From the NCBI GenBank assembly GCA_965644265.1, contig OZ286473.1:45880001-45944000 (forward strand): a stretch of 64,000 nt of DNA. The letters run 5' to 3'. Each line of letters opens with the position of its first letter. Positions within the stretch are counted from its first letter, which is position 1. Below are positions 9,107-15,900 of this stretch, in pieces. The DNA is from Glycera tridactyla. Taxonomy: Eukaryota. The position numbers and the translations under genes are program-made. The notes under the pieces are model-generated. The model saw nothing but the letters and a program-made list of their open reading frames with translations. It was not told where the DNA came from and did no database searches.

Positions 9107-9216
9107 CCCATCACCTTATTAATCTTGAGGATGCCCAGTGAGCTGTTTATGTGTCTTAAAATTGGAGATCGATTTTAAACTACTACAGTCATTGCTCTCC
9201 GATGGATGCCAATTTA
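9107..9216 (-). pseudogene. Degenerate partial duplicate of gene B's last exon directly after the stop codon
   Basis: catcaccttatt...cagtgagctgtttatgtgtc...ggagatcgattttaaactactacagtcattgctctccgatgga parallels 9336-9432; in-frame stops are present. Confidence 0.75.
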
Positions 9217-9526
9217 AAGCCAGAAATTATAGAAAATGATGAAGATCAGCGAAATTGGAGGATGAAGTGACCTCTGCAGCAAGCTGCAAGCGGACGTGCA
9301 ATGATTAGGCCACCATTTGTTCATGAGAGTTTCTATCACCTTATTGCTCTTCAGGTTTCTCAGTGACCTGTTTATGTGTCCCAGTATGGGAGATTGGTTT
9401 TGAACTACTAGTGTCATTGTTCTCCGATAGAAGCCGGTTTTAACAATCTGTAAATCACATGGTTGCTGATAAACGACCCACTCTGCAATGTCCTCTTCTA
9501 GAAGGAAGGCATATTTATCACGGGAC
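9214..9526 (-). CDS. Gene B last exon: S2 end plus hydrophobic C-terminal tail
   Basis: tttttgctgtag| acceptor in phase 2. [25 protein letters not shown]...[10 protein letters not shown] matches S2 'KYAFLLES...PCD...KLKNKWW...C'; then [27 protein letters not shown]-stop. Confidence 0.92.
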
Positions 9527-12900: not shown

Positions 12901-15900
12901 TCATTGGAGAATTGGCTATGTTTTCTGTGGAATTGCCTACGCCTGACTGCCCTCATAAAAATTTCATCTGTATGAAATGTTCTTGTGATACCTGTAGCCT
13001 GATGAGTGGAAACTATATTAGCCACCGTGCAAATTGGGCTAAATAGGCGATTGGAGCAATTTATTCCACTGATCATTTCTTTGGCGCTGATTACTCATAT
13101 GGCAATTGAAGCAATTCATCCCACTGATTATTTCTTTGGCGCTGATTACTCATGCGGCAATTGAAGCAATTCATCCCACTGATTATTTCTTTGGCGCTGA
13201 TTACTCATGCGGCAATTGAAGCAATTCATCCCACTGATTATTTCTTTGGCGCTGATTACTCATGCGGCAATTGAAGCAATTCATTCCACCGATCATTTCT
13301 TTGGCGCTGATCACTCATATTTGCATGGTTAGTGTCGTGAGATCTGATGCCAGGACCACCAGGTGGAATACAATTCTCTCTACTCACTCATCGTGCATTC
13401 CTGCTCTTGTACCACATATAGTGCATAGGCAATTCTCTTTGGCATACATTTACTGAGTGGAAATAGTGATCTCAATAGACAAAACAAACTACTAGTGTTA
13501 TGTCCTTCCTCGAAGTAAACTAGCACAGCCTACTTGTCCTTAGGGTGGGGTTTTCCAAATGCTTGTCCATAGAGAGTATGACAGTTTTTATGTGAGGCAG
13601 CTACACTGTGAGCATTGAATATATGTTTTCATATTTGGAAATACATGTGCTTGAATGTGCATTGACACTCTTGTTCACTCTCACGTCGAGAGTGTGCATC
13701 GGAATTTCGTTTGTTTGTGTGAGGTTTGACGGCATGTATCAACCCTAGGGTTATGTATGCCGTGTGTTCCTGGTTAATGAAAGCTAGATGTTCTCTCCCC
13801 AGCAGACACCTCTCTCACGAACCCTGAACACAGGATGAATGGGAACCTGAAAGGTTGCCAAGTGGAAGTAGCTGGCAGTTCGGACACACCTCTACCTACT
13901 CTATATCAACATAATAAACTATTGATGGCATATCTAACTATGTGTAACTGGCTGGAAGCTGACACTCAAGCTTGATAGGAATGCTTGAAAAGAGCGTCTC
14001 TAATGCTTACATGTGTATGTGTGTGTTCCTACAGAGTTCGTTAGGATTACATATACAGATACGGAAGTTTTTTATTGCATAAGGTTTGAGAGGGAGGACT
14101 CACATTGCGATTGACATCTCCAATAATACCTGTCCAGGATCCGTTGCTAAGGCGTTGACCAAACTCTCCATCAGCTACTTCCTGGAATTCCAATCGATGC
14201 CCCTTGAAGATGGTAGCCAGTAAATCNNNNNNNNNNNNNNNNNNNNNNNNNNNNNNNNNNNNNNNNNNNNNNNNNNNNNNNNNNNNNNNNNNNNNNNNNN
14301 NNNNNNNNNNNNNNNNNNNNNNNNNNNNNNNNNNNNNNNNNNNNNNNNNNNNNNNNNNNNNNNNNNTCGTCGTCCTTGTCGTCATCATCGTCATCACAAT
14401 ACCTGGCAATCAGATGGTTATTGCTTACTCACCCACAATGAAACCCCGGTAGTTCCATCGCGTTCCATTGACCACCTTGATAAAGTAGGGTACCATCTGT
14501 CGAATGTACAAGGTGACATCCCTTATAGCAGAGGCCTGTCGAATATATCCAATAGTCTGTATGATCTATCTCCACATTCGTCTAAACATTCATCCATACA
14601 TCCGTCCGTCAGTCTGTCCGTCTGCCTCTTTGTCCGTTCTTCCCTCCATCCGTCTGTCCATCCGTCGCTCTGTCCCTCCGTCTGTCTGTCTGTCTACCTA
14701 TCCATCCATCCATCCATCCATCCATCCATCCATCCATCAATCCATCCATCCATCCATCTATCTATCCATCCTTCGGTCCACCAATATGTTCATTCATCCA
14801 TCCATCCATCCATCCACTCCCCCACCCATCCATCCATTTATCCATCCATCTATCCATCCACCCATCCATCCACACATCCATCCATCCTTCGATCCACCAA
14901 TATATTCATCCATCCACCCATCCACTCACATATCCACCCATCTCTCCATCTATCTGTCTTACCGTCTATCTATCCAATCGGCTCCCAAACCATATGAGAA
15001 AATTCTCCCTCCAGCCACTACACCTCCTATTATTATATGCATTCCTTCATCCTTCAATCAGTTCATCCGTACTCACCAGTTTACTTGACACACTATACGT
15101 AGCTGAACTTGCTGCTGACGTGGTCGCAGAGGTGAAGTAGGGCCCACGCGGAGGGGTATCATGTTTGGCAGTTGTACTTATATCTATCAAGATATAGATA
15201 CATTTGTTTATAGATTTCTTCAGATTTTTATTCACGTTTATACTCACACAGGAGGTACAGGTACCATATCTCCCTAGTACCCGAAATAATACCGGACAAA
15301 AAACATGACATGAAAGACAGAGGGCTAATAGAAGAAATATATACTATTTACAGGAAGCGAGAGTAGGTTAGAAAATACGGCACAGACACAGAGAAAAATT
15401 GGAAAAATAAAAAACATTAAGCAGCATCTACGACAATACTTCAGGAGAGAGAAGAAGTGTACAGTTATATGCAAAGAAAATCGGAGACGTCTCTACCACA
15501 AATAGCTTATACTAAGAAGTTTCAAAATTGTCCACATCGTATCGATGGTCCTTAAATAGAGGTACATCAATATAGAGACCAGCATTCTATCTTCAGGAGG
15601 GTATATGTGTATATCCCAAAAATTGACATACATCGTGTTCTCCCTCGCTACATATTTAATCGGAAGAGAGTAACAGCATTTAGTTCCAGAAATTCCCACC
15701 AGAGTATCTCAAGGTATTGACAGGGGGTAGCACTTCCAGTGAGCTGACTTCCACTTCCCGTTTCAATCACCATCATGGAAGGTCATTTGGATCATCATAT
15801 TTGTCTAATCAGGTACAATAGTCATGGTGTACACCAAATATGCCTGAGCTACAGTCAGTGCAGAATCAGCTATAACTTCAAAAGTCTTGAACACGATCCC

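Follow-up and report, generated by a model that had tools for sequence, protein, structure and literature searches.

Background

To our knowledge, all described members of the iGluR family, among them bacterial GluR0, the insect IRs and the plant GLRs, retain a pore between the ligand-binding segments S1 and S2, and we know of the isolated iGluR clamshell solely as a laboratory construct. The kainate-binding proteins of frog, chick and goldfish are built without an amino-terminal domain, and prokaryotic GluR0 has neither an amino-terminal domain nor M4; an amino-terminal domain of the ANF_receptor type is typical of iGluRs, if not universal among them. AChBP is a free secreted pentamer, for which glial expression and function have been shown.

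Gene model and ligand-binding domain

Within the window, by which we mean the whole 64,000 nt stretch of Glycera tridactyla contig OZ286473.1 that was analysed, a gene model of 13 exons running from ATG to stop was built on the minus strand. The exons are phase-compatible and, joined by conceptual splicing, yield 463 aa with zero internal stops. All visible splice sites of the 13 exons are canonical, the single unread acceptor, that of exon e3, lying in an assembly gap, and none of the marks of a pseudogene (in-frame stops, frameshifts, lost splice sites) was found in the 463 codons. The GC content is about 40%, and the five spliceosomal introns have canonical sites; the window contains eleven N gaps, one of them within the locus.

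As the earlier note had proposed for this DNA, five minus-strand exons could be confirmed, on sequence grounds, to encode a complete iGluR-type ligand-binding domain (LBD). Joined in the order e2, e3, e4, eX and e5, they give 864 nt of open frame, equivalent to 287 aa plus stop, the e2-e3 join being presumed across the gap. The exons and the elements between them are as follows.

14433-14535, minus strand: LBD exon e2, first S1 strand to Y-R-G-F-I-V, ending in phase 1; placed by position, splice sites and junction motif only
14227-14366, no strand: assembly gap (N) within the e2-e3 intron, adjoining the first visible base of e3
14104-14226, minus strand: LBD exon e3, S1 core, donor gtgagt, ending in phase 0, with Pfam and GluD1 matches
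12566-12775, minus strand: LBD exon e4, 210 nt, end of S1 with the ligand-binding Arg, linker of ~10 residues, start of S2
12030-12142, minus strand: LBD exon eX, 113 nt, entering in phase 0 and ending in phase 2, central part of lobe 2 (..W..M..EGVAR..)
9870-12029 (ends approximate), minus strand: 5'-truncated LINE (reverse transcriptase) in the eX-e5 intron, beginning just after the eX donor
9214-9526, minus strand: last exon e5, end of S2 (YAFLLEE, PCD, KWW..C), 13-residue hydrophobic tail, TAA stop

The similarity of e2 to iGluRs is statistically not significant. Its end ('..YRGFIV', phase 1) and the start of e3 ('DLLATIF..') together form the contiguous iGluR S1 motif Y-x-G-[FY]-x-[IV]-D-L, and the gap at 14227-14366 hides at most a few coding bases, the unread part being the e3 acceptor and the two bases that complete the split codon. 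Order, strand and homology are collinear across the gap, the frame there being presumed. Exon e4 comprises 70 codons in phase 0/0, bounded by ...ctgcag and gtgagt. Exon eX supplies exactly the 38-residue interval between e4 and e5 in correct phases; it was chosen among 179 candidates, with a similarity test against an approximate reference peptide. A frameshifted pseudogene, in which the direct join of 12566 to 9526 runs into a stop after 9 codons with about 38 lobe-2 residues absent, was ruled out by eX. Some pairwise LINE alignments extend into eX, but profiles argue against its being LINE sequence. The element at 9870-12029 matches Pfam RVT_1 with an E value of 1e-19, and its alignment to a profile of 60 LINE sequences begins only at ORF residue ~62; on eX, a profile of the LINE endonuclease end reaches -2.3 bits, a score not above that of shuffled sequences.

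Exon e5 matches GluA1 and GluA2 with an E value of about 1e-5 (S1S2 positions 184-257), and e3 matches the GluD1 LBD (E 0.003). Furthermore, e3, e4 and e5 are collinear on iGluR LBDs (S1S2 positions 44-74, about 86-143 and 184-257, respectively), and Pfam Lig_chan-Glu_bd matches e3 (E 0.001, positions 37-74 of 115) and e4 in collinear order, each match taken singly being below the gathering score. Taken together, these matches carry the bilobed S1/S2 signature of iGluR LBDs. The Arg and the acidic residue (Glu) for the ligand alpha-carboxyl and alpha-amino groups are retained, as are the cysteine pair of the lobe-2 disulfide and the KWW motif; two ligand-contact positions (side-chain carboxylate donors) are, by eye, apparently replaced. 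The similarities support descent of the clamshell from animal AMPA/kainate/delta-type receptors and not from bacterial binding proteins, which match a 52-residue hinge core only, and the iGluR origin claimed earlier for the domain is upheld.

Fusion of S1 to S2 and absence of the pore

Inside the single exon 12566-12775 the end of S1 reads through a linker of ~10 residues into the start of S2 without interruption, just as had been described for this 210-nt exon. When aligned with S1S2 constructs of GluN2A and GluA2, the e4 peptide runs end to end across their artificial linker and differs in length by 0-6 residues, and language-model features group it with contiguous SBP_bac_3 domains. No transmembrane-grade segment is present in the 287-aa LBD chain, in which no 19-residue window exceeds 1.3 (Kyte-Doolittle); the sole hydrophobic stretch consists of its last 13 residues (tail hydropathy 2.1). 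In addition, the six frames of the whole 64 kb contain no SYTANLAAF-like (M3) motif. The pore module M1-M2-M3, which lies between S1 and S2 in an iGluR channel subunit, is absent from the chain, in agreement with the earlier note. An M4 helix is missing as well, since the frame stops 29 residues past KWW and the 9.2 kb downstream, up to the window edge, contain no M4-like exon.

Upstream exons

The remaining exons of the model lie upstream of the binding domain.

36565-36646, minus strand: putative first coding exon (prediction only), ATG plus 27 signal-peptide-like residues, donor CCG/gtaagt, ending in phase 1
35842-35970, minus strand: calcium-binding EGF exon, 129 nt, phase 1-1, with fitting splice sites and phase
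22664-22705, 19963-20004, 19066-19107, 18612-18653 and 17764-17805, minus strand: five 42-nt microexons, ag/../gtatgt, phase 1-1
15077-15183, minus strand: exon e1, S/T-rich, 107 nt, phase 1 to 0, connecting the stalk to the binding domain

The putative first exon encodes a hydrophobic core and ends with a consensus donor in the phase needed by the next exon, and the EGF exon matches Pfam EGF_CA over its full length (1-43/43, E 4.4e-6). Each microexon encodes about 14 residues rich in S, T, P and E; four of the five sit in tandem units of ~450 bp, between which the microexons are 95% identical and the remaining unit sequence 68%, and one microexon copy is without an acceptor (AG to AC). No ANF_receptor-type amino-terminal domain was recognised by eye among minus-strand segments of at least 55 aa in 15184-38600, Pfam having been applied to the EGF ORF only; the place of such a domain is taken by the EGF and S/T stalk exons. 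Because it is predicted to have no pore module, SYTANLAAF, M4 or amino-terminal domain, the encoded protein cannot be a channel subunit.

Searches for related sequences

A phmmer search with e4 against 1.84 billion representatives retrieved no orthologue or paralogue; its four matches, CarboxypepD_reg, Ig and RRM repeat proteins, were judged spurious. Word-index searches returned nothing for e4 (94-299 aa window) or for e5 (70-224 aa). When the LINE ORF of the window was searched to place the genome taxonomically, no match exceeded 41% identity, and those with a name came from amphioxus; the genome thus seems to be absent from the searched collections, which makes the blank homologue searches weak evidence. 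An annelid-rich atlas cluster of 226 aa (SBP_bac_3/Lig_chan-Glu_bd) was lost on excluding pore-bearing clusters and probably consists of fragments. The remaining LBD-only atlas cluster, of 261 aa and from chordates, matches deposited S1S2 constructs in size. A 'Choline_transpo' match on the plus strand (34940-35536) lies in a microsatellite that also matches two other, unrelated transmembrane families, and was rejected as a low-complexity artefact; Rfam and tRNA scans of the window gave nothing.

The earlier note knew of no described equivalent, and likewise no description of a natural pore-less iGluR clamshell was found in the literature searched. The reference survey of the iGluR family leaves out, by design, sequences without the SYTANLAAF motif (PMC6307864). 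Surveys with this requirement are blind to such genes, and so more of them may exist.

Proposed protein and rival explanations

Judging from its sequence, we consider the locus to be probably functional and to encode a channel-less iGluR derivative of EGF-stalk-clamshell architecture, with a probability of roughly 0.55. The product would be a secretory-pathway protein of ~463 residues, with a signal-like peptide, one calcium-binding EGF, an S/T-rich stalk and a C-terminal clamshell. The stalk, of ~105 residues, would come mostly from the 42-nt microexons and is probably O-glycosylated; the clamshell, of ~265 residues, would derive from an AMPA/kainate/delta-type subunit with M4 replaced by the short hydrophobic tail. 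Loss of the pore is most simply pictured as a single genomic deletion that began and ended within coding sequence, by which two exons would have been fused in frame. The clamshell may still close around a small ligand of the alpha-amino-acid type; glutamate is probably not that ligand, as two side-chain donors for the carboxylates appear replaced. Of the natural ligand-binding protein suggested in the earlier note, the iGluR-derived clamshell with its short linker and without a pore stands, and its expression, folding and ligand binding are predicted.

With no channel to gate, such a protein could serve as a binding module that is either shed or tethered to the surface, possibly by a GPI anchor, acting as a sensor partner, decoy or scavenger. 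The signal-like first exon and the lack of a transmembrane segment are compatible with a channel-less secreted or surface binding protein, this class being a prediction. GPI-anchored proteins combine an N-terminal signal peptide with a C-terminal small-residue omega site, a polar spacer and a hydrophobic tail; inspected by eye, the C-terminus (..CTSACS / LLQRSLHPP / 13 hydrophobic residues, stop) resembles the GPI-type pattern. Surface tethering appears more likely than a free soluble binding protein, since the clamshell is predicted at the C-terminal end of an EGF-stalk protein with a hydrophobic tail. The fuller proposal is more tentative, and we put it somewhat below an even chance: that the gene is an expressed, selected member of an undescribed class of iGluR-derived, channel-less amino-acid-binding proteins, held behind an EGF-mucin stalk at the cell surface (GPI-anchored or shed), which would act as chemosensory partner, decoy or scavenger for an amino-acid-like ligand in a lophotrochozoan-type animal.

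The main rival to the functional reading, unlikely though far from negligible, is a decaying relic, i.e. an iGluR gene or chimeric part-copy that lost pore and M4 by rearrangement, is non-functional and has kept its frame open through recency or luck. The remodelled 3' end speaks for it, where the following dead copy of e5 was found.

9094-9213, minus strand: decayed partial copy of the e5 interior, beginning at the stop codon, at a 225-nt offset, ~79% identical, with an in-frame stop

So do the insertion of the LINE directly after the eX donor, where it could impair splicing, the lack of a canonical poly(A) signal within 500 nt of the stop, the failure to retrieve relatives, the apparent replacement of two ligand-contact positions, and the microexon copy with the lost acceptor. 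Against a relic, the 463 codons in 13 exons are stop-free with canonical visible splice sites and matching phases, key structural residues are kept and the microexons have changed far less than their flanks. Moreover, the stop codon borders on an old partial duplication (p = 0.21, about 21% nucleotide divergence) which the frame has outlived, whereas in neutral simulation at 0.1-0.24 substitutions/site (indels ignored) 286 codons stay free of stops in only 3.7% to 0.08% of copies; an open frame this long rarely outlasts such neutral drift. Comparison of e5 with its dead copy gives a dN/dS of 0.43 over 36 codons. As the loss of the pore and the 3' duplication are not ordered in time, the selection argument covers the ORF and not strictly its pore-less state.

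It is improbable that the protein is instead single-pass, the frame leaving e5 at a weak donor after '..CSLLQ' for an M4-type exon beyond the start of the window, and such a protein would still be pore-less. A candidate donor (CAGAG/gtcact) does lie 21 codons before the stop, at roughly what we take to be the position of the intron before M4 in AMPA-type genes, and the window extends 9.2 kb past e5, which leaves room for a distant exon farther on. However, the donor is poor at +3 and +5, these 9.2 kb are devoid of an M4-like exon, and the hydrophobic run of the in-frame tail is typical of a cleavable C-terminal signal. More improbable still is an assembly artefact, in which the assembly collapsed or misjoined the locus and lost pore exons that the animal has. 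The N gaps of the window, one inside the locus, would allow for it, but that gap is in the e2-e3 intron, well away from the expected place of the pore, and the S1-S2 junction falls in the middle of the uninterrupted 210-nt exon, with the nearest N 1.4 kb away, in frame and with native-like hinge length, a clean hinge not expected from misassembly. It is hardly credible that the gene is bacterial, coding for an amino-acid-binding protein and present through horizontal transfer or contamination. In favour of this, a metagenome scan with e4 returned only two binding proteins, both of bacterial ABC transporters, which share a 10-residue motif with it and are 41-44% identical to it over 51 residues, and the PDB and atlas look-alikes of e4 are SBP_bac_3 proteins. 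But the metagenome matches were found through that motif and cover the hinge core only, the rest of the 287 residues being unaligned, e3 and e5 match animal iGluRs only, and the locus has five spliceosomal introns, about 40% GC, an intronic LINE and animal-type EGF and mucin modules upstream.

Comparison with known systems

If the channel-less iGluR derivative is natural and selected, the binding domain would be re-usable alone, the gene could be used to test whether iGluR domains have non-ionotropic roles, and the iGluR superfamily would have its counterpart of AChBP. On the fuller proposal above, nature would have undone the ancient joining of a binding protein to a potassium channel. Like the engineered S1S2 cores of GluA2, GluN2A, GluK and others, which were made for crystallisation, the encoded domain joins S1 to S2 by a short hydrophilic linker and has no M1-M3 and no M4. 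Unlike them, it has its fusion encoded by the genome in one exon, with a natural linker of ~10 residues, and stands C-terminally in an EGF-stalk protein. With AMPA/kainate/delta (AKDF) subunits it shares S1/S2 sequence kinship, the Arg, the acidic residue, the lobe-2 cysteine pair and KWW, and it differs from them in being without the pore module, SYTANLAAF, M4 and amino-terminal domain. Kainate-binding proteins and GluR0 both retain the pore between S1 and S2, in contrast to the encoded protein. Bacterial SBP_bac_3 proteins of the GlnH type have the same contiguous two-lobe topology with short crossovers and a hinge length within 3-4 residues, and share with it the Arg-containing motif T-x-x-R-x-x-V-D-F-S; however, the similarity is limited to the 52-residue hinge core, and the animal gene is intron-bearing with its other exons iGluR-like. 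The analogy with AChBP made in the earlier note is reasonable as 'works like', although a C-terminal clamshell with EGF-stalk and hydrophobic tail is likelier tethered than free. In concept, the locus resembles molluscan and annelid AChBP, as the ligand-binding domain of a channel family would exist without the channel, whereas fold and family are unrelated and the tethering by stalk and tail is here predicted from sequence alone.

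Fusion of S1 and S2 within one exon

Six-frame translation recovered all peptides quoted in the earlier note on the minus strand of one locus, a candidate gene for an iGluR-type ligand-binding domain (LBD, the S1 and S2 clamshell) devoid of a pore.

Features of the candidate gene and its surroundings (window positions, all genes and exons on the minus strand; / marks splice borders)
ATG at 36646, minus: putative first exon, signal-like 27 residues, consensus phase-1 donor
35842-35970, minus: EGF exon, 129 nt, phase 1-1, full-length EGF_CA match (E 4.4e-6)
17764-22705, minus: five 42-nt microexons, ...acag/ and /gtatgt, phase 1-1, about 14 S/T/P/E-rich residues each
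15077-15183, minus: e1, S/T-rich, phase 1-0, joins the microexon stalk to the LBD
14433-14535, minus: e2
14227-14366: N gap in the e2-e3 intron, adjoining the first visible base of e3
14104-14226, minus: e3
12566-12775, minus: e4, 70 codons, phase 0/0, ...ctgcag/ and /gtgagt
12030-12142, minus: eX, 113 nt, ...ctacag/ and /gtcagt, in the required phase
9214-9526, minus: e5, acceptor ...tgctgtag/, first base 9526
38632-40632, minus: LINE ORF2, long open, endonuclease and reverse transcriptase, 656-667 aa

The direct fusion of S1 to S2 was borne out, as e4 reads without a break: the final strand of S1, then [10 protein letters not shown], then the opening strand of S2 (TFEDLL...GTLEDGG). To our knowledge, M1-M2-M3, about 150 residues, separates these two strands in every channel-forming relative; with the end of S1 and the start of S2 in one exon, there is therefore no intron to house pore exons. 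The chain also lacks a hydrophobic M1/M2/M3 segment, as had been claimed: the top 19-residue Kyte-Doolittle mean is 1.29, located in the C-terminal tail, and the highest inside the LBD is 0.95. Across all frames of the whole 64 kb, nothing resembling [SAT]-Y-[TS]-A-x-L was found; downstream of the stop, the 9.2 kb contain no M4-like exon, and the nearest 500 nt lack both AATAAA and ATTAAA. Tandem repeats lie within the e3-e4 intron (13046-13318, 55 bp, 5 copies, 94% identical) and downstream of the gene (8000-8528, 74 bp, 7 copies, 96% identical).

A further exon restores the open frame

A direct join of e4 to e5 shifts the frame and meets a stop after nine codons. On the 263-residue GluA2 S1S2 core, a laboratory binding domain with S1 linked artificially to S2, solved-structure alignments assign about residues 86-143 to e4 and 184-257 to e5; about 38 lobe-2 residues would therefore be missing without another exon. 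The pseudogene suspected from this frameshift and shortfall was set aside when every AG...GT/GC-bounded, stop-free segment of the needed phase in the 3-kb interval was enumerated and eX was identified, which with its split codon supplies exactly 38 residues and joins the five exons in a single open frame of 287 codons and a stop. It carries W..M and T-E-G-V-A-R where AMPA receptors have K-M-W-x-x-M and A-E-G-V-A-R-V. Its score against a lobe-2 peptide was reached by 9 of 20,000 exon shuffles, and its ORF outscores all others among the 2,135 stop-free segments of the window's six frames (40 vs 34 for the next); we treat this similarity as a lead. The length, order, phases and splice sites of eX do not depend on the reference peptide.

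Because eX forms the 5' edge of an ORF running on into a LINE, and some pairwise LINE alignments stray into it, LINE origin was tested and rejected: a 60-protein LINE profile did not align before ORF residue 62 (envelope start at 50), and its endonuclease-end half scored -2.3 bits on eX, matched by 319 of 500 shuffles. These profile results place the LINE in the intron, with its start just past the eX donor.

The N gap covers the e3 acceptor and two bases finishing the codon opened by the last G of e2; this codon was represented as X or NN and left unfilled. The flanks lie on one strand in the correct order, the residues across (..Y-R-G-F-I-V and D-L-L-A-T-I-F..) form the contiguous S1 motif Y-x-G-[FY]-x-[IV]-D-L, and e3 begins near position 34-37 of the Pfam S1 model, which has 115 positions, so that a few coding bases at most are hidden and frame continuity is plausible. 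The similarity of e2 itself lacked statistical support (3,829 of 20,000 shuffles).

Ancestry and putative ligand contacts

The iGluR derivation proposed earlier agrees with the matches of e5 to GluA1/GluA2 (E about 1e-5; of 159 with E up to 1, the 60 listed are all chains of the AMPA receptors GluA1 or GluA2) and of e3 to the Pfam S1 model (E 0.001) and to the binding domains of GluD1, GluK4/5 and GluN3. Alone, e4 resembles bacterial SBP_bac_3 as much as S1S2 constructs, as expected because only these have a contiguous hinge. When environmental sequences were scanned with e4, two high-GC bacterial ABC-transporter binding proteins with a common motif, [10 protein letters not shown], turned up; these amino-acid-binding lipoproteins (L001 9533-10504, L002 554-1510) have T-rich linkers and a hinge motif near-identical to that of e4, so that the strand with the Arg is strikingly convergent or conserved at this spot. 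Against the 287-residue model, both aligned only over a 52-residue hinge core. The gene thus derives from an animal iGluR, and acquisition of a bacterial gene by transfer is rejected.

Residues kept in the alignments include the alpha-carboxylate-binding Arg, the acidic L-L-E residue, the K-W-W motif and, from the lobe-2 disulfide, the first cysteine (P-C-D); a second cysteine lies four residues past WW. Judged by eye with GluA2 numbering, Phe appears to stand in place of the P-L-T Thr and G-G-V in place of the G-S-T turn, which would argue against glutamate itself as the ligand.

Upstream exons

Joined, 13 exons encode 463 residues with no internal stop. In four tandem units of about 450 bp the 42-nt microexon is the best-conserved portion (95% pairwise identity vs 68% elsewhere in the unit); in one unit (19518-19591, minus) the microexon is intact and the acceptor AG has become AC, so this copy is probably skipped in splicing. 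No amino-terminal-domain ORF was seen by eye among minus-strand segments of at least 55 aa between 15184 and 38600, and the long introns may hold additional exons. Between the last microexon and e1 lie two 127-nt copies (15934-16074 and 17024-17212, minus; 87% identical), both open in one frame (SLSENFEDD..), possibly extra exons or a repeat. An ORF at 34940-35536 (plus) with weak Pfam matches to three unrelated membrane families, Choline_transpo among them, falls within an AT-rich microsatellite; it most likely reflects low sequence complexity rather than a gene.

The 3' end and selection on the frame

Directly after the stop codon, at an offset of exactly 225 nt, part of the e5 interior recurs as a copy (about 79% identity over about 118 nt, with an in-frame stop, after which homology ends). 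Because the TAA is at the border of the copy, the C-terminus in its current form probably dates back to the duplication. e5 and the copy have diverged by 0.21 (bootstrap 0.15-0.29), with dN/dS 0.43 over 36 codons. In a neutral simulation disregarding indels, the share of replicates in which the 286 readable codons remained free of stops fell from 18% at 0.05 substitutions per site to 3.7% at 0.1, 1% at 0.15 and 0.08% at 0.24. This gives moderate evidence that selection kept the frame since the 3' end lost M4; the timing of pore loss is not addressed. The last 21 codons of e5 (9214-9280, minus) follow a weak donor-like site and are AT-richer (36% vs 44% GC), and the hydrophobic tail may have arisen by exonisation of intron sequence.

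Interpretation and known systems

The observation as a whole, a pore-less LBD with S1 fused to S2, is confirmed by the continuous e4, the 287-codon frame and the absence of a pore motif. Of the interpretation, the coding architecture (open frame, fused exon) and iGluR ancestry stood; that the product has a function is plausible. We put a functional channel-less binding protein at a probability of about 0.55. A decaying relic is the main rival, at a clearly lower probability, and the small remainder goes to anchoring by M4, an error of assembly or a bacterial origin.

No related proteins were found in protein collections. The closest database relatives of LINE ORF2 are only about 41% identical, the named ones from amphioxus, which suggests that this genome is missing from the collections and that such blanks say little. 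A natural pore-less iGluR binding domain was not found described in full-text literature searches. The reference metazoan iGluR survey (PMC6307864) required a sequence to have at least four SYTANLAAF residues, so pore-less genes are kept out of family catalogues by design. Of the atlas clusters that resemble e5, all that is left after requiring the absence of a channel domain is a chordate set of 261 aa, the same size as S1S2 constructs.
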